Source of the DNA: Klebsormidium nitens
Lineage: Eukaryota > Plantae > Klebsormidiophyceae
Assembly (NCBI GenBank): GCA_000708835.1
Contig: DF236981.1
Span: forward strand, 1-64,000
DNA length: 64,000 bases
Reading direction: 5' to 3'
In this document: positions 50,788-61,872 of the stretch, one piece after another
Numbering within the stretch: the first letter of the stretch is position 1
How the letters are laid out: each line of letters starts with the position of its first letter
Translations under genes and position numbers: made by a program
Notes under the pieces: model-generated
Told to the model about the DNA's origin: nothing
Databases searched by the model: none
The model's input: only the letters and a program-made list of their open reading frames with translations

Positions 50788-52590
50788 CGGGCGGCCACTG
50801 ATACGGGAACCATCAGAAAGCTTTAATCGGTGCAGCCAATGAATGCGCGCTTAGGACGGTTTGAAAGTCATTGATCAGCTCAGAGGACCTCAGCACTGCT
50901 CGCCTAGACTCTTGCCCAGCTCTTTGTTTGCAGGCATAACTGAGTTAACCATCGTCAAGTCAGGCAAATCATACGTCGTTCGGTTGGCCGGCCATCTGGC
51001 AAGTGTGCCCTGCACAAATCAAGTCGGCCGTTTTGCCCTGTTTGGCTCACTGATTTCCTTCCGGTAAAGCATCGTAACATGTTAAAAATTCGCGGACTCC
51101 CTGATGCTGGCATGTGGGACTCATCATCGATCCGCTATCAAGAGTGGCTGTGTGGGTGGAGCTGCATGGCCTGCGCGGCAAACTGGTTCATGATGATTCT
51201 ATCTTTGAGTAGTAATCGACTAAGTCTAACACTGTAACTGTGGTCCCAGCTTGATGCTGCTGTGGCGCAGCGCACCATGAGCTCATCTTACAACGTGTAC
51301 AGACAGGCTCGTTCGTTCTTGCAAAAATCAGCGCAGCATCAGTATAGAATGCAGAAACCATATGCACGTGCGCACCGAGTGACCCGTGACCATGTACTGC
51401 ATATGCGCAGTATATCGTATGGCCGGTCACGGGTCGCTCGATCAGTGCGCGGGTGGCGAAAATAATAGTTTTTAGCTGAACGTACTGAACGTGACTGCAC
51501 ATGTGTATGAACGGATATACTTTCAAGATGGACGCGTCCGATCAGTAATAATTTTCTAGCTTGCATGTTATAAACACATGTTGATGCTTTGATCGAGAAC
51601 CAAGGCCCGGCCCTCAGTGCCAGCGCGCATGCGTACATACATAATAGGCTGGAGTCCATAGATATGTTTATAAATGCGAGTACGTAGCTGTCTGCTCGAC
51701 TCGCTGGACTGTACTCGTGCACTTGCCCATGCCTGCGCTTAAAGAGGGCTTCACAGGACCGGCCGGGCCAAGTTGTCGTCAACCGCGTACGCTGACTTTC
51801 AATCGTCCGACGATTTTGATCGCGTGACGTCGAAATCGAAAACCGGTGTGAGCCCCATCTGCGCGGCGTGCGGAAAAAGAAGAAAAATTGCTCCGGCCGA
51901 GTTTTGATCGCTCGCTTTCATCCGGTGAAAGTCGAGCGCACTTGCCAGTTGTGCTAGAAATTTCTGTGTGCCCCAATTAAGTTGGATACGAAATGCACCG
52001 GCCGGGCGGTATATGAAGTCTGACGCCCTCTTTAATTCATCTGAGACAATCACGCACAACTTGCATGATGCATTGGTGAATTCGACGCGTGCAGCTCTAC
52101 AACGCCAGCTTTTGAAAAGCTGCCAGACTGTTCATGTCCACATGGACTACGCTCGTCACCAGGTAGAGCCAGTCAAGAGGCCACTCAGTCAGTGCGTGGA
52201 GAGTGGATGATCGACATGCCTAGAACGTCAGTTTGTCTTTATAACAAGTCCAGTCCAGATGTCAGAAGCTCGTCTTATGCATTTCTGTGAGCCCAAAATC
52301 TTGCCTCCGCAAACCTGGACAAGAGCATGCTTTTGTACTTGCTCGCCACAAAGGTCGGTACGCCCTCAGGCAGAAAGTGCGCGAGCTTCTCTCACAGCCT
52401 TCTTCAACGCCCCTGCCTTTTTTGTCCGCACAAACACACTCTCGAGCCTCGCTCAACCCGTCAGGCTTATCGGCCATCAAAACCAGCACGGTTCACACAA
52501 CGCTACTTGGCGGGTCAATGTACAACGCGAACAAGCTGCGAACGTGGTACAAATCTAAAACACGCAACTATCAAAACCGCGGCAACCCGC

Positions 52591-55500
52591 TTATTCCCGG
52601 ATGTACGTCTTCTTTACGAGGAGCTCCGCAGGTACGCTATCGTTCTTCGCCCGGTTTTTGACTTCACTCGGGGGAGACGGCATTGGGCTGGTGGGGGGCT
52701 TGAGGTCGGGGTATTGCGTATAAGGGCTAAGCGGCCGGTTGGCATATGGCAAGTCCAGGGATGACGACCGCGGGAATGCGCCGTTGCCTTGGGAAGCCTC
52801 GGCGCCATCGTCTTCGCCGTCTTCGCCTCCTTCGCCGCCCTCCCACGGCCACTTGAACGCTTTTACTGCGGAACGGATGCCAAGTCAGAGTGCGCCCAGA
52901 AGCGAGGCCAGCAGACAGGGAACGACCTCACTCAGACTGTATGTTAATTCTCGTATGAGAGAAATCAGCAGACGAGTTCAATGTCATTTCAAGCGAGGAG
53001 TGGAGGCCATAACCAGCCAGAACGACGAAGTATTTGAAAGTGCTGGGAGCTATGTAGCGGAAACTGCACGGTGAGGTCCAGAACGATTCTTGACCCGACG
53101 TCCCGACGGCTGAACAAAATTGCAGGACACATCTTGCATACTTGGATCAAGAACCCCATGATGCAGCGACAAAGGCGTGATGCCCCGGTGTTGGCAGCTG
53201 ACCTGTCTCGGCTGCTTTCTCGACGGGCTCCGCAATGGGCGCGCCCTCCCACGGCCACTTGAATCCCTTCACGTCCTCCACCACTTCCTCCACCTGCACG
53301 CACACCCGCCCATCCGTGAATCGGCGGTCAAAATGATACCGCAGCCAAGCAGGACCGCTTTCTGGTTATCTCATAACCAGAAATACACGCGGCCAGCCTT
53401 TGGTGTCGCAAGAGTCTGACAGGAGGGAGAAGTACTGCAAGCTGTGCGAAGCATGCCCTTTTTAAAAGCCCCGCGGCGATTGAGCGATAATTAAGACATG
53501 CGAAGCATGTCCTTTTACCCCTCCCCTTAATTCTCGTACAAGAAACGTACTGGCACAGCGATGCCAGATCTCCACAGGCAAGGGACGGATGACGAGCCCC
53601 TTTTCGTGCAATTGCTCGTATCCGCCCCCTTCCGACCTGCCATTCGGTTGCCTCACCTTCTCCTGTGCCGCCTTGACCGGCTCGCTCTTCTGCACGTCCT
53701 TGGCAGTCGCAGTCACCTTGGAGGCGGCCTCCTTGGCAGGGGCCGGGGCAGCATCGACCGCCTTCTCGACAGCCTGCACAGCACACCGTGCCGTCAGCAA
53801 GAGGCTCGCTGTGCGACCGGCCTTTTGGAACACATGCTCGGGGAGCGCAGACGAACGGAGACGATAAATCAAGAGCTTCGAAGAGGTACACGGGAGTAGT
53901 CCCCGCAGTGGCAGACCGAATATATCTTTATAAGGTTCCAACAGGAGTATTTTTGCAGCTGACTTGCCGTGAAGGAAAGCCCGCAGACAGGGGACTGGTC
54001 CCTTGGCACTCCGACTTGGCAGAAATAGGTCAAAAGTAAGGCACACCCCCGCGCTCGTGGCTAGATTGTGACCCACCTTCGGCGCTTCCTTCTTGATATC
54101 GGCCACCACCTTGGGCGCCTCTTTCTTCACTTCCTCCACCACCTTTGGAGCCTCTTTCTTCACGTCCTCCACCACTTTAGGCGCTTCCTTCTTGACCGCT
54201 TCCACCACTTTCGGCGCTTCTTTCTTCGCTTCCTCGACCGCTTTCGGCGCTTCCTTCTTCACCGCTTCCACCGCTTTCGGCGCTTCCTTCTTCACGGCTT
54301 CCACCGCCTTCGGTGCCTCGCTCGTCGTTTTCTCTGCGGCTGCCTTGGCGGCCGCCTGTGCTGCCTCGAGGCCGCTCTTCCCCCCCGCCGGGATGGGCGT
54401 GGGTGACGTGGGCGGTTTCAGATCATCATACATTGTGTACGGGCTCAGGGGCGTCGGCGAGGGGGGGAGGTCCGTCGACTTCTTCGCCTCGGGGGCCGCC
54501 TGTTGCTCCTCTTCCTCCTCTTCGGGGGCTTGCTGCCAGGGCCATTTGAAGCCCCCCAGAGCGAACTTCGGTTTCGACTCCTCCTGCCGGGACTGGTCCT
54601 CGGCGACTGCACCAGAGATGACGCGCTGGCGTTCCTCCTCCTTGCGACGCTCCGCCTCCGCCTTGGCCTTGGCTTCTGCGCACACGGGAGGAGCACGCAA
54701 GGAGTCAGGACGTGACGAGGTCAAATTCAGGGCCTTCCATTGGTCCACTTGTCGTACCTGAACATCGAACTGTCGCGAGCCAATAGTAGAGCTCAAACCG
54801 AGATTCAAGAAGGCCGCGCAGATGCCGTCGATTTCTGTTATGGTATTCGCGACTCACGTCTGTTTGAAAACCCACTGGCTCCAGAAATTCAGGAGCAGTG
54901 CAAACCCGATTCAGATCCAAAACTGTGCCACTTCACATGGCATGTGAGTAGAACACGTCAAAGAAACCGCTTTTAGAGTCAGTTAAAAGAGGGCCCAGCA
55001 AAGCTCCGTATTCATTCTCCCTTTTTCCATCAAAGCGCTCTGCCGACGGACCCGGTTATGCAAGGCCTTCATCGCGCTCAATACAAACCGTCGTCCGGAA
55101 TAAATCCACTCACGCCCGACGCTGCAGGTCTCGTTTCGCCGCTCCTCACCTATTTCCTTCTTCTTGGCTTCCACGTCCGCCTTCTTCTTCTCCTCCTCCT
55201 TCTTTTTCCCCTCCTCCTTCTTCTTCTGATCCGCCTCCGCTCGCTGCTGTGCCAACACACGCGCTTCCTCCTCTTGCTTCTTCCGCTCGGCTTCCTTTGC
55301 CGCCGCCTTCTTTGCCTCCTCTGCGTCCCTCTCCGCCTTCGCTTGCGCCTCCTTCTTCTTCTCCTCTTCTGCTTTCTTCGCCTCTGCGTCCCTCTCCGCC
55401 TTCGCCTGCGCCTCTTTCTTCTTCGCCTCTGCCGCCTCTGCTGCCTCTTGCTCTTTCCGCTTCGCTTCTGCGGCCTTCTTAGCATCCGCAGCCTTCTTTT

Positions 55501-58500
55501 CTTCCGCGTCACGCTGCTTCGCGGCAGCAGCGTCGGCCTTCTCCTTAGCCTGCACCAAGACGAAGATCAGTACATCAAGATTCATGTTACGCCGAGATGT
55601 CGCTGTATTGGCCCTACGAATCGTTTTCTTTGACGGAGTACTGGTATTATCCAAATCAAGGAACGCGACAGTCTGGTCTCTGAAAGATGGGTGAGGGGAA
55701 GTGCGCCTTTGAACGAGAACAGTGAACAAAGAGTGTCGATCGACATTGACAAGAAGTCCGCAGACCTCATTTTGACTGAGAACTCCACAGATCCAACAGA
55801 CGCTATGACATGCCCGAGTGTGCATGATCTCAAACAGGCACTTTGATGTATCTTGGCAAGACCAATCCTCCGTTATGCATGAGGAAGGATCGTCACCATT
55901 TTTGTGCGCGCCGACACTGCTCCGAAAGGCCTGAGCACACTTCCCCACAGCTCTAACAATCCTTTGGCTCTCTACTCTTTTGCATGACGACCGCATCGCA
56001 TCAGCTGCGCTATGCACCCGGGTGTGCACGCGTCCATTCATACGAAGTGACCATCATCTCGACCACTTGCTGATGCGACCTACCGGTCGTAAATCGTCAA
56101 AAGAGCTGCACAAAAGGCGTCTCCCTTTAGTAATACAACTACCATTTCACTTCAAACCTCATCAGCCTCCCACAACCCCATCACCGGCAGACTCGTACCT
56201 GCGCAGCCTTCTCCTTCTCGGCCTCGTCCTTTAGCTTTTGCTCCGCCTTCTCACGCGCATCCTCTGCTGCCTCCTGCTTCTTCTTGGCGGCAGCCGCCTT
56301 GGCCTTGGCCGCGTCTGCCGTGCGCTTGGTCTCGCGGTCAATCGACACTGGGGCCGGACGGCTCTCTTCGCGAACCTCCGCAAGCACCTCGGCGCGCTCC
56401 CTGGCACCGAATCTGCAAGGGAAGCGGTGGGCAAAATTGGACTCCTGATCGTTACAACTGGCAGACCATCAGTAGTGAAGAAGCTCCAGCCAAGGGATCG
56501 ATGCGAGTTCATTCATATGGCTCCGTCGAGCGAATGCCTACTAATCAGGTCATCGCCGCAATTTAAGAATGCCTGGGGCATTGTACCTATCATTTCCCGG
56601 CCGTCCAACCGCGTGGTCACCAACTTTCGAGCATTCCGGATCGACGATCACTCCCAAAACCGGGAAATTCGGAGCAGACCTTCGTGCAACTGAAGAGAGG
56701 CTAAATTATGCAAAGTTGAAAAACTCTGAAATACTCAACCAATAGGACATAAACATAGTACGACAGAACAGGGCAATCTACCTGATTTGCGACTCATATT
56801 GGCGTGCGTTGATGAGCCACCTGTTTCTCATACGGGATGCCAAGAGAGAACCACGACCGGATGGACGTCTAAGAGCTCGAGTTCCGAATGTAAGCATTCC
56901 AACTGAATTAAGGACAAGACCTAGCACACGTCAGCTCACGTCTCTCCCCGCCTGGCGGCCTGGAGCGCTGCCTTCTCAACAGCCCGCGCCTCCTTGGCTG
57001 CCTGCGCTGCCTCCTGCAACTGCGCCAGAAGCTGCTCCGCCTGCGCCTGTGCCTGGGCGGCTTCACGCTCCGCTGCTGCCGCCTCGCGCTTCGCCTCCGC
57101 CTCCTCGGCGCGCAGAGCCTGGACAAGCAAGTTCGTCGGTCAGGTGCTTACAGGTCGATTGCCACGTTCGAGACAAGCCCTTTAGAGATTTGGCATTGTC
57201 CTATAGGTGTGTAACACCCCTTTTGGAGCTTCTGATTCGTCTAATCGCGCCTCAAAGGCCTTGACACGAACATTCGGTTGCCCGGCTTCGATCAGGGCTA
57301 ACCACTGCAGACTGCCTCCCTGAGTAAGAATCCAGGCATTCCGAAGTTCAATTCACGCGTGCTCTGCCAAGCAAAAATTGCGGCGATCTGCCTGGTCAAC
57401 TCAGGAAGTAAGATCTGTGTGGCGGTGTGAATGGCACCTTAAAACAGAGTGTGCGACCGTCGGTTATCTTTGCCCTATCAAAACCAGGATTGGGCTCCGC
57501 ATTTCTTCGCGCCCAATGCTGACATAAGTAGACAAGATCACTAGTATATATAGGCTCTTGAAGCATCCTCGCCCATCGACAGAATATCGCCGACTTCAGG
57601 GTCTGCCGGAAGAACATGCACTTCTGCCATTACCCAGACTCCTTTTCCGTTTCGTTGGGACCCCCCCCTCCCCTTACCTGCAGCTCTGCGGCCACTTCGG
57701 CCCTCCTCTCCGCTGCTATGCGCTGGCGCTCCCTCTCCTCTTCCGCCTCTCTTCTTTGCCGCTCGCGTTCGGCGGCCTCCTCAGCCGCCCGGGCCTCTGA
57801 ACACCAGCCACATAAAGTGTGAGCTGAGATCTAGCCTTGCCAATGCGACTGGAAAATCATTTGGTGAGGCACAGATTGTATTCTCGTGTCCCCGTGTGAA
57901 TGCACTCACCTCGCTGGAGAGCTTTGGCCCATGTTCACAACCCTCAAATCTCCACCGTCCACCTCTTTTCACAGAGAAGAAACTCTTAGCTTCTTTGTAG
58001 TGCAAAACTTTCAACATCGACCCATAGCACAACTCACTATCCCGGTTCCCCATTCCTATCGAAGCCTTTCGACGGCCTTGAATACGTCCACCTCAACCCC
58101 AGGTCCTTTTCTCAGCACAGTCCCCTGACCTCCTGATTCTAAACTTCTAAGTTGTCCCCTATCCCTGCTGCTTACCTGCGTCGCGCCGCTCCTGCTCCCG
58201 CCTGGCCTCCTCCTCTTCCTCCTGGCGCTGCTTCTCGACACGCTCCGCCTGCGTGAGCCCCGTGACGGGCAGTGCCGCCAGCTGCTCCTCCAGGGATACC
58301 AAGGGGGCGTCCGTCTCCGCCACCACCTCGACAATCTTGTTTTCGGACACTGACGGGTTGGACAGGATCGCACCGATCACCTCCGCAACCTGGCGCACAC
58401 AGGTTGGAGTGAGGTCAGGGGTCTTCCTCGTTGGGCACTGCTTGCAGGAAACCAGGATCCTGAGCGTGCAAGCTTTACGACTTGTGTTGGGAGAGACTGC

Positions 58501-61500
58501 GACTTGCATGTTATTCACAACCGACCACTTAATCTGTCCCCGCTCAAACAAAGCGTCCATGCACTAACCAGGGAACCAGGAATCTGTGGATTGAACGGGC
58601 AGCCAGCATCGACAAGGTGTATTGCACAAGTTGGGTTGTACGATCATTGCAGAGAAAGTTGCAAATCTCTGTAACAATGCACAGAACCCTGATCCCCTTG
58701 CCACCACGACAATTCACGGGCAGCCCGCCACATTGCCCGTACCTGCAACTGCGAGACTTGGCCCCCAAACTCGGTGTTGGCTGCCGCCAGGCGCACGTTG
58801 TGGGTCTTCTTGTAGTCGTCGGTGGGGCGCTCCATGCCACCGGGGCGCACAATCTGCAGATGATGAGCGGAGAAGGACATGAGTCAGCAAAGGGTGGCAT
58901 TTCCATCCGTAAGACCATTTCTCCAACAAGCTTTCTTGATTCTGTATGGTGTGCCAGTCACGAAGTCATACAGGGATGGAGTGCAAAGCCGTGATGATTT
59001 GATACTTCAGATGGTTCCTTGAAGAGCTTTGTGCTTTTCACTTATGGACTCCCATGTTTGGCAATGCCGTGCTTTGCCAGCCTTGGCTGTGATTTGTCAG
59101 TGACAACCTGATTGATTGCTCTGCATCAAGACAAGTGCAGGGAACATTGTGAATACCTGCATCACCAATTGCTGTTTCACTGAGCCCAGTGGTCCTCACC
59201 GTGAAAGCCATCCCGCTGTTCTCCAGCTCAATCTCGGCCTGCCTCTTCCAGACCAGCACGCCCCAGAACAAGCTGCAAACATAGCCCGACAATAAGACAA
59301 TCAGGCCGGACCAGGCCCTTGCAGGCAAAAGCATGCGGGGTAAGGTGAACTCCAATGCCAAAGCCCCCGGCTAAATTGGTTGTTTCATTACTACCTCTGG
59401 ACAAGGTGGCCGACGAGTCGATGGGTTGGATCAAAAGACCAATAGACGCAGCAATATATGGAGGTGGCTTCTGAGGGACTGTACACAACGCAAACCTTCG
59501 ACCAAGGCGTTCATTGCGCACATCATCAGAGAGACTGGTTGGACGCCTCCACCAGGATAAAACTTCGTCGGGGAAACCGACTCACTTGAGAAGTGCTGCT
59601 GGGAATCCAACCTTGCCGGCCCCGATGGATGACACCATTACAAACTGCGCCACATTGGCCTCCACCGCTGCACACAATGAGATATCAGTTTCAGGTAATA
59701 GTAGGTCAAGCAACTTGCTCACTTCCTTGCCAGGGCAACATTCTACAAGTGGAGTCTGACCACACCGAACTGGCAATCCCCGAGCGGTTTTGATCTGAAA
59801 TAAGCCTCAACAACCATGTCAGGACACAGCAGCACATGCCGCCCAGATTGTGTGACGCCTTTCAGCATCTAGGGTCTTTCCAGGAATCTTGTACAACAGC
59901 TCTCCGTTGCGTCCACCGAACCGTCGTCTAACTTTACCCAGATCCCGACTGCTCGGATGTGGACTTCTTCTGATCACCACTCCTTTATGCACGCTAATGG
60001 CCGCATTCTTGAACACGGTTGACGCCAACGCCCCTCTCTCTCCCACCTGCTCTAATGAGGGCCTTGGCCCCCTCCCCGTCCACTCGGTACGGCCCCTTGA
60101 CATCCCCCGCCGCGCTTTCTCCTGCCCCAATGGCTGCCACAACCTTGCTTGCATTCCCAATGGCGCGTGGGATCGTCTCGGGGTTGTCCAAATCATACTC
60201 GACCACGTCAATCAACCGCGCCTGCTGCGGCGACACCAGAGCGTACTGGGTCGCAAATGCGAGGGCTTCCTGTGCCTTCTGCACGTTGCGCACACCGGCG
60301 CGCACCTTGAAACCAAGGGCGCTCAGCTCCCTGAAACAAAGAAGCAATGATACTTTCAGAACAGAAGGTACGCATTGACGCATACATCGGCGTCAGAAAC
60401 TGACCATAATCTGAAGTCAGGCTGAGCGCCACCGGGGTGCAAACAAGGAATCCTGCAGCAATCAGGCCAACTGTGCCTATATGCCAAGAGCATGGATCAT
60501 GCTTTAATATCCCTCTTGATCACTACACTACTGTCTTAGCGTGAAGGCAGCTCTCGACTTCTTTTCTGCAGCTTCATAAACGTTTTGCATGCACCACACA
60601 TTATACAGCAATCCTGAAATATGAAACCTAAAGCAAACCCCACATGTCCCCACCTGACTGTACGAATCCCGACTTTCCCAGTGGCTCCCGCGACAAACAC
60701 GGTGTTCGGGTCGCTGCGCTGCTGCCTTGCCGTGCCGGGCAGCTGGAAACCCTGGGGCACCTTAGCGGCGGCCTTTTGAAAGATGGATCCCGACTTGAGC
60801 GCCGGCTTGGCTGATTCCGCAGTGTCAGCCACCTTCCTCTTGACGGTGCCTGGCAGCTTGAAGAAGCCTGTGCATGATGCCAACAAAGTCACCTTGTATT
60901 CTGGACTTGCTCAGGTTTTGAGATCGATGGGCACGCTGGGATTGCGTCACAGTCTGTGTTGGTTGACAGATACTCACTGGAAAAGGTTGCAAATATGTTT
61001 GCGGAGTATTCAGAAGGTTGCAGAAGCTTGTCCACTTTCCAGCCATGCAAAAATGACACAATGTGGGCACCGCGCTAGTTTGGTTGTATGATTGAGCTTC
61101 CGTTTAACAGCATCCCATGTGCTTTCTTCTTGTAAAACCAGCGGGCTTGTGGGGGCCCTCAAGCAGCCCCTTTAAGCTTCTACTTGTGAACGCGGCTCAT
61201 CATTGGCCACTTCACATGCAAAAGGCATGCAATGCATGTCTCATCAACACAGCTTCCAAGAGATCATCTGAGCTGGCCCTGACTTTAGCAGCTATTTTAG
61301 GTATCGCCGTTCAGGTGCCAAAATTCAAATTTTTTACATGGTCTCAAACAGCAAGGGTAATGCACCCCCCACCCTTGCCAGAGCAAGTGGGATCTAAAGC
61401 AGCCCATGGCAATGTACCCCTGGACCTTTTTAAAAAGTATCAGACTGTCTTCAAGGACCACCTGGAACATTCTGAAAGACAACATGAGCTCACAGAAAGA

Positions 61501-61872
61501 AAACAGTTAGCTTGGTCGACAGCTCCAAGATCTTCCGTCAAATGTGCCGGCACAAAGCCCGTCTCATTCAATGCAAGCAGGGGTGATGCGGGTATTGTTC
61601 TTGCAAAGGTGGAATCTGTTCAGCTTCCCTAAGCAGATCCTTATTTTTGCACCTATGGGCCCATCCCTCAACAGGAAGAATCTCTACAGCCTCATTGTGC
61701 ACATACCTGTTCCTTTTGCCTTCACCCTGGCATGTTGCGGCCTGCATTGCCCTGTCAACTGCACGGGGCACACCTGCGCCCCCAGAAAGCTGGAAGATGA
61801 CAGCGCACATGCTGACCCCTGGAACGACGAGGCCAGCAAACTGCCCGAAGAAACAGAGGTCGCCGACATCAT
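52591..61872 (-). CDS. TIC62: Chloroplast TIC62-like NAD(P)-binding Rossmann protein with a long coiled-coil/repeat C-terminus and FNR-binding motifs, ~15 exons
   Basis: Ser-rich transit-peptide-like exon 61872-61707; VFVAGATGKVGIRTVREL; VMVSSIGAGKVGFPAALLNLFWGVLVWKRQAE; IVRPGGMERPTDDYKKTHN..FGGQVSQLQVAE..NKIVEVVAETDAP. The C-terminus has PLSPYTMYDDLKPPTSPTP and RPLSPYTQYPDLKPPTSPMPSPP; the last exon is missed by the ORF track. Confidence 0.9.
54077..54320 (-). repeat. Coding 33-bp (11-aa) tandem repeat, ~7.4 copies, EAPK(A/V)VE(A/E/D)VKK
   Basis: Direct translation: EAPKAVEAVKK EAPKAVEAVKK EAPKAVEEAKK EAPKVVEAVKK EAPKVVEDVKK EAPKVVEEVKK EAPKVVADIKK EAPK. Confidence 0.95.

Follow-up and report, generated by a model that had tools for sequence, protein, structure and literature searches.

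An expressed Tic62 orthologue of Klebsormidium nitens carries two FNR-binding motifs and supports an origin of the tether motif before land plants

Introduction

TROL, the thylakoid rhodanese-like protein, is a membrane-integral tether of ferredoxin-NADP+ reductase (FNR) in vascular plants and combines transmembrane helices with a rhodanese domain. In the plant system, which also includes Tic62, a polyproline-II motif is described in the literature as holding FNR at the membrane in a pH- and light-dependent manner. The FNR-binding module of Tic62 was reported to occur only in vascular plants, as probably a recent acquisition there, and to be absent from the moss Physcomitrella (Balsera 2007, PMC1847441). 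A preliminary description of the DNA studied here had summarised the field in similar terms, as a vascular-plant innovation reported missing from moss Tic62. Here we analyse 64,000 nucleotides of the Klebsormidium nitens genome (contig DF236981.1, positions 1 to 64,000; hereafter the window), the minus strand of which encodes an expressed Tic62 orthologue with two FNR-binding motifs in its C-terminal tail.

Later papers have placed the tether in vascular plants, in higher plants or in angiosperms, and a 2017 paper states that Chlamydomonas lacks orthologues of the tethers. Most recently, a 2026 preprint described the tether as a plant-specific strategy of higher plants and proposed Lhca4 as the algal dock (bioRxiv 10.64898/2026.04.07.716946). 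Our search of the open-access literature found no description of the FNR motif outside vascular plants, in algal Tic62 or elsewhere, in keeping with the preliminary description; an earlier account in other sources is possible. Papers that name Tic62 together with Klebsormidium, or together with Marchantia, do not discuss the motif in the passages available to us. What is new here is the recognition of a known FNR motif in the Tic62 of a lineage thought to be without it; the sequences themselves were already public.

Results

The two peptides first noticed in the window are both present on the minus strand (Table 1), and each carries LSPYxxYxDLKPPTSP. A six-frame scan of the whole window with the pattern LSPY..Y..LKPP.SP returned these two sites only; given the residue frequencies of the window itself, chance would yield about 2e-9 matches. 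Motif 1 agrees at all positions with the published repeat consensus, S-P-Y-x2-Y-x-D/E-L-K-P2-S/T/A-S/T-P-S/T-P (Balsera 2007, PMC1847441), and motif 2 agrees save for the last S/T, which is Met, as it also is in several angiosperm motifs. Over its 18-residue core, motif 1 does not differ from the last motif of Punica Tic62. When each motif region was searched separately against 177,635 distinct sequences of the Protein Data Bank (PDB), the sole significant match of both was chain C of entry 3MHP (E=5e-6 for motif 1 and E=4.9e-5 for motif 2), a 26-residue Tic62 peptide bound to pea FNR.

A word-index search with the motif region alone matched angiosperm Tic62 with E-values down to 7e-30. This type of search prefers proteins with many motif copies and restricts candidate length, so its angiosperm-only results say nothing on algae or bryophytes. 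The non-vascular carriers described below were revealed by querying 1.84 billion representative proteins with a single Rossmann exon (60048-60329) in HMMER and then scanning the full-length matches for the pattern.

Both motifs lie in one gene. A chain of 15 exons from 61872 to 52591, separated by 14 GT..AG introns, rebuilds the public K. nitens protein GAQ79513.1 (1045 amino acids, aa) residue for residue, and tblastn of this protein against the window gives 100% identity over the exons. The best HMMER match of the Rossmann exon was a 90-residue fragment whose cluster includes GAQ79513.1. The host is therefore a streptophyte alga and not a vascular plant, as had been surmised before the organism was known. 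The terminal exon bearing motif 2, which the preliminary description had proposed, is real: it is spliced in RNA contigs and already belongs to the public model. Angiosperm Tic62 proteins align colinearly to minus-strand exons at about 60700-58270 and then to the motif at 54439. An ATG at 61046 was considered as the start of exon 1 and was ruled out by the public model, which the window matches exactly and which begins at 61872. A search of the locus against Rfam gave no match.

Contigs from four public RNA runs, aligned to 52560-58559, establish the splicing of the last exons to the Rossmann domain that the preliminary description had assumed. One contig of 3.5-3.65 kb bears all eight joints in each of three runs, which come from three separate studies and carry two organism labels; the fourth run has these joints split over two contigs. 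The joined blocks are 58392-58176, 57796-57677, 57117-56940, 56412-56198, 55548-55150, 54675-54076, 53772-53654, 53290-53203 and 52865-52560, and all joints read CT..AC on the plus strand, that is, GT..AG on the minus strand. These head-to-tail contigs have zero mismatches in all three studies. By exon-by-exon phase arithmetic, the frame stays open for 737 codons, includes both FNR motifs and ends at the stop codon at 52591-52593. Beyond 58392 the contigs continue into sequence from 58746 onward, the preceding Rossmann exon, and they reach 950-1043 nucleotides upstream of 58392, where 927 nucleotides of coding sequence are needed. More broadly, 29-42% of the words of the locus are present in 23 RNA runs from eight studies under two organism labels, and a share of about a third fits a spliced mRNA of the locus.

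About 50 nucleotides of the intron at 55550-56198 (positions 56006-56055) also occur in RNA contigs of three runs. Those contigs diverge from the window on both sides of this piece, which points to a segment common to another transcript or to a repeat elsewhere in the genome; it has no match in Rfam.

The encoded protein opens with a presequence that we presume to be a chloroplast transit peptide, with 14 Ser/Thr and zero charged residues among its first 40 aa. In the Rossmann head, the loop GATGKVG (within VFVAGATGKVG) conforms to GxxGxxG, and Pfam NAD_binding_10 scores 111 bits (cut-off 27.2) at aa 116-322, covering profile positions 1-184 of 184. This hit required the full protein and fell below threshold when exons were scanned singly. 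The signature of Tic62 group I, E-R-P/A-T-D-x-Ar-K/G-E-T-H (Balsera 2007, PMC1847441), appears as ERPTDDYKKTH, which agrees at 10 of the 11 consensus positions, with Lys replacing Glu; Volvox and Chlamydomonas incerta have the identical variant in their orthologues, as does another motif-bearing protein.

An AlphaFold2 model built from an alignment of eight long-form orthologues (mean predicted local distance difference test score 54.7) shows the alternating strands and helices of a Rossmann domain at aa 108-349, followed by very long helices at aa 360-477, 509-605 and 617-705 within the Lys/Glu/Ala-rich spacer, which spans about 350 residues. From aa 706 the tail is modelled as disordered, and the 10-residue blocks of highest confidence in the tail are the two FNR motifs. 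The charged helical spacer is common to chlorophyte, bryophyte and fern orthologues and is missing from angiosperm Tic62. In K. nitens, the three predicted helices at residues 360-705 (exons within 55150-57796) are possibly spacers of the single-alpha-helix or coiled-coil type.

The tail contains a second conserved element, FKWPW, which occurs three times and accounts for all six tail tryptophans of the K. nitens protein. In Tic62 tails outside seed plants its conserved form is G-[FL]-[KR]-W-P-W-[EQ] (the WPW motif), alternating with the FNR motif; carriers in our collected set include P0116, P0117, P0169, P0208, P0212, P0213, P0214, P0151, P0103, P0197 and P0099. We found no description of the motif in the open-access literature.

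To assess orthology, we built a maximum-likelihood tree from 20 Rossmann-domain rows, with no outgroup from the Tic62-related groups II-VI; a failed pattern match had excluded Closterium, P0126, Ceratodon, Ananas and C. incerta. Six chlorophytes fall on one side and K. nitens is sister to the land-plant clade (support 100/100), so that the order of chlorophytes, K. nitens and land plants is that of the species tree.

All full-length matches were scanned with the pattern and with an unfiltered motif profile, with thin sampling at several nodes and some absences that depend on a single gene model. FNR and WPW motifs occur together in the algae K. nitens and Closterium sp. (Zygnematophyceae, four FNR motifs) and in one EukProt transcript; in the liverworts Marchantia polymorpha (Mp1g27480), Riccia fluitans and Calypogeia fissa and in Sphagnum compactum; in the lycophyte Diphasiastrum complanatum; and in the ferns Adiantum, Ceratopteris and Psilotum. 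Three species, the moss Ceratodon purpureus and the chlorophytes Ostreobium quekettii and Asterochloris glomerata, have WPW alone. Neither motif was detected in Chlorokybus atmophyticus (one 511-aa model), Volvox, Chlamydomonas incerta, Chlamydomonas sp. CCMP681, Parachlorella, Myrmecia, Sanguina, Dunaliella or Haematococcus, and none of the ten chlorophyte Tic62 orthologues scanned has the FNR motif. A further 154 proteins, angiosperm Tic62 wherever named, carry the FNR motif only, with the WPW motif in none of them.

Two public models of one Marchantia polymorpha gene (P0207 and P0117) measure 1393 and 1143 aa; what distinguishes them, a duplicated block of about 230 residues with one WPW-FNR-WPW unit, is either a true tandem duplication in one accession or an artefact of assembly or annotation. 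The Chara braunii model GBG77158.1 (P0058) ceases to resemble the family midway through the Rossmann domain, past LGTGKFGLPAGILN, and continues with unrelated sequence. It is probably mis-joined, and as a chimera it says nothing on whether the motif is present or absent.

This distribution bears on two alternatives. Short linear motifs can evolve repeatedly and some intermediate lineages (Ceratodon, Physcomitrella) lack the motif, as would be expected had the peptide arisen convergently in Klebsormidium and in vascular plants. We consider this highly unlikely, given that the same orthologue, with the same tail and the same alternation with FKWPW, occurs in Closterium, three liverworts, Sphagnum, a lycophyte and ferns; and Ceratodon, which keeps the long tail and FKWPW and is without the FNR motif, looks like a case of loss and not of primitive absence. 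The identity of the motif 1 core to that of some angiosperms could also be taken to indicate contamination, horizontal transfer from a vascular plant or a wrongly fused gene model. Such an origin is scarcely credible for a gene with 14 GT..AG introns and a Rossmann domain that branches outside the land plants, whose tail architecture is common to Closterium and bryophytes and not to angiosperms, whose head and tail are covered by single RNA contigs from three studies, and whose words recur across the wider set of RNA runs. Convergence, contamination and fusion are thus largely excluded by the shared tail architecture together with the RNA contigs.

Table 1 Features of the Tic62 locus in the window (window positions; aa, residues of GAQ79513.1)
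Feature	Position	Strand	Remarks
K. nitens Tic62 orthologue, coding span	52591..61872	(-)	15 exons, 1045 codons + stop; joined across GT..AG introns, they yield GAQ79513.1 exactly
FNR-binding motif 1, TPLSPYTMYDDLKPPTSPTP, aa 759-778	54395-54454, core 54401-54448	(-)	39.3 bits to motif profile
FNR-binding motif 2, RPLSPYTQYPDLKPPTSPMPSPP, aa 998-1020	52669-52737, core 52684-52731	(-)	39.1 bits to motif profile
First FKWPW motif, aa 728-732	54536-54550	(-)	about 35 residues upstream of FNR motif 1
Second FKWPW motif, residue 935	53249-53263	(-)	exon 14
Third FKWPW motif, residue 958	52843-52857	(-)	exon 15
Exon 1	61707..61872	(-)	start codon and Ser-rich N-terminal presequence, aa 1-55; presumed chloroplast transit peptide
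Exons 2-7	60654-60867, 60047-60330, 59586-59667, 59200-59272, 58743-58853, 58176-58389	(-)	NAD(P)-binding Rossmann domain
Exons 8-11	57678-57796, 56940-57118, 56199-56412, 55150-55549	(-)	Lys/Glu/Ala-rich spacer, aa 360-705
Exon 12	54077..54675	(-)	first FKWPW motif, FNR-binding motif 1 and 11-residue repeats
Tandem 33-nucleotide repeat	54073..54313	(-)	7.3 copies, 82% matches; encodes seven 11-residue KKEAPKxVExV units after FNR motif 1
Exon 13	53657..53773	(-)	RNA joints and gene model
Exon 14	53203..53293	(-)	contains second FKWPW motif
Exon 15 (terminal)	52591..52865	(-)	third FKWPW motif, FNR-binding motif 2, stop codon 52591-52593

Discussion

The locus encodes a Tic62 orthologue, and we regard it as very likely that the two tail motifs of this K. 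nitens protein dock FNR as in plants. Folded as a polyproline-II helix, each algal motif would contact FNR at a site remote from the active site of the enzyme. The acidic stromal pH in the dark would strengthen this binding and so retain FNR at the membrane, whether thylakoid or envelope. The two FNR sites would be presented at the end of a long helical arm; FNR itself is a dimer in the pea crystal (3MHP).

Several points weigh against this view. We infer FNR docking in the alga from homology with the pea and Arabidopsis system, and the presumed transit peptide, and with it a location in the chloroplast, from residue composition. The tail departs from that of characterised Tic62, having additional FKWPW motifs and a long helical spacer. 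For green microalgae, Lhca4 has been reported as the means of positioning FNR, so another main FNR tether may exist in K. nitens. In the survey, the absence from Chlorokybus is that of one gene model and the Chara model is uninformative.

The main rival explanation is that the conserved motif docks a partner other than FNR in the alga, as a generic polyproline-II ligand that came to bind FNR later, in the land-plant line. The binding data for the motif come from vascular plants only, the tail has in FKWPW a second conserved motif without a known partner, and the use of Lhca4 by chlorophyte algae would fit as well. Nevertheless, the algal motifs keep the published FNR-binding consensus, and one 18-residue stretch is identical to an angiosperm motif. 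The Klebsormidium and angiosperm lineages are estimated to have diverged several hundred million years ago. Such constraint on a motif most simply reflects a partner surface that is unchanged and equally conserved, and we therefore judge a partner other than FNR to be unlikely.

Taken as FNR-docking sites, the motifs support the view that the tether motif is older than land plants and not an invention of vascular plants. That Closterium, liverworts and Sphagnum share the motif with an expressed Klebsormidium gene, where it is nearly unchanged, points to an origin in early streptophyte algae, and the survey likewise supports the absence of the motif from Physcomitrella-type mosses as a loss. 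The suggestion in the preliminary description that the tether predates land plants and was lost secondarily in some lineages is thus borne out by the carriers (Closterium, liverworts, Sphagnum, Diphasiastrum and ferns) and by Ceratodon, which is without it. In the simplest reading of these sequences, a long charged tail with WPW would predate the split of chlorophytes and streptophytes; the FNR peptide would have been gained, on this sampling, between the divergence of the Chlorokybus lineage and that of Klebsormidium; the Bryopsida mosses at least would have lost it later, which agrees with the Physcomitrella report; and angiosperms, among the lineages sampled, would have retained the FNR motif and lost the spacer and WPW.

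We also put forward, tentatively and at somewhat less than even confidence, a more specific history. The ancestral Tic62 of the green lineage may have been a long scaffold in which a charged helical spacer of about 300 residues linked a Rossmann head to a WPW tail. In it, WPW may have acted as an independent docking or membrane-interface element that predates the FNR tether. Early streptophytes may then have inserted FNR peptides between the WPW motifs, giving rise to a two-motif module from which angiosperms (again among the sampled lineages) lost both WPW and the spacer. If true, the WPW motif marks an undescribed partner or anchoring mechanism in the regulation of electron transport.

A pre-land-plant origin would correct an evolutionary statement repeated since 2007, in which the Ser/Pro motif of Tic62 and TROL is a recent gain of vascular plants. 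It bears on models in which the location of FNR steers linear versus cyclic electron flow, which assume different solutions in algae and plants. It also makes the question of the FNR tether testable in non-vascular models such as Marchantia and Klebsormidium, with the undescribed FKWPW motif and the long helical spacer as candidate parts of an ancestral tether.

Relation to described FNR tethers

Vascular Tic62 (pea psTic62 and Arabidopsis At3g18890; group I) has the same orthologous NAD(P)-binding Rossmann head with the group-I signature, and the same repeated SPYxxYx[DE]LKPP[ST][ST]P motifs in its tail, the last one near the C-terminus. The K. nitens protein is longer (1045 aa compared with about 450-750) and, unlike these proteins, places a helical Lys/Glu/Ala spacer of about 350 residues between head and tail. 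It has two FNR motifs, where one to five are usual, interleaved with three FKWPW motifs, an element that the 154 FNR-motif-only proteins lack.

The peptide of 3MHP chain C, from the Tic62 peptide-pea FNR complex reportedly described by Alte et al. in 2010, is identical to motif 1 at 17 of 22 aligned residues and to motif 2 at 17 of 24. Both algal motifs retain the whole LSPYTxYxDLKPPxSP core and depart from the peptide at variable positions only (Ala to Met or Gln, Ser to Thr and, in motif 2, Asp to Pro).

TROL has, according to the literature, the same FNR-binding Ser/Pro motif. In the K. nitens protein Pfam gives NAD(P)-binding families only and no rhodanese domain, and neither the AlphaFold2 model nor the composition reveals a hydrophobic membrane segment. 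The N-terminal helix of Chlamydomonas Lhca4 has the same proposed purpose, the positioning of FNR at the thylakoid, but this helical peptide of an antenna protein is unrelated, and the authors of the preprint see in it little similarity to the Tic62/TROL motif (bioRxiv 10.64898/2026.04.07.716946).

Long-form Tic62 of liverworts, Sphagnum, lycophytes, ferns and Closterium (e.g., Mp1g27480 and CAI5521849.1) is known to us as database entries, and we found no published description of it in the open-access literature. These proteins share with the K. nitens orthologue the same head, the charged helical spacer and a tail in which [FL][KR]WPW[EQ] alternates with the FNR motif. Motif number and spacing vary among them, and many end in a C-terminal GFKWPWQQ; the K. 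nitens protein instead stops about 30 residues past FNR motif 2.

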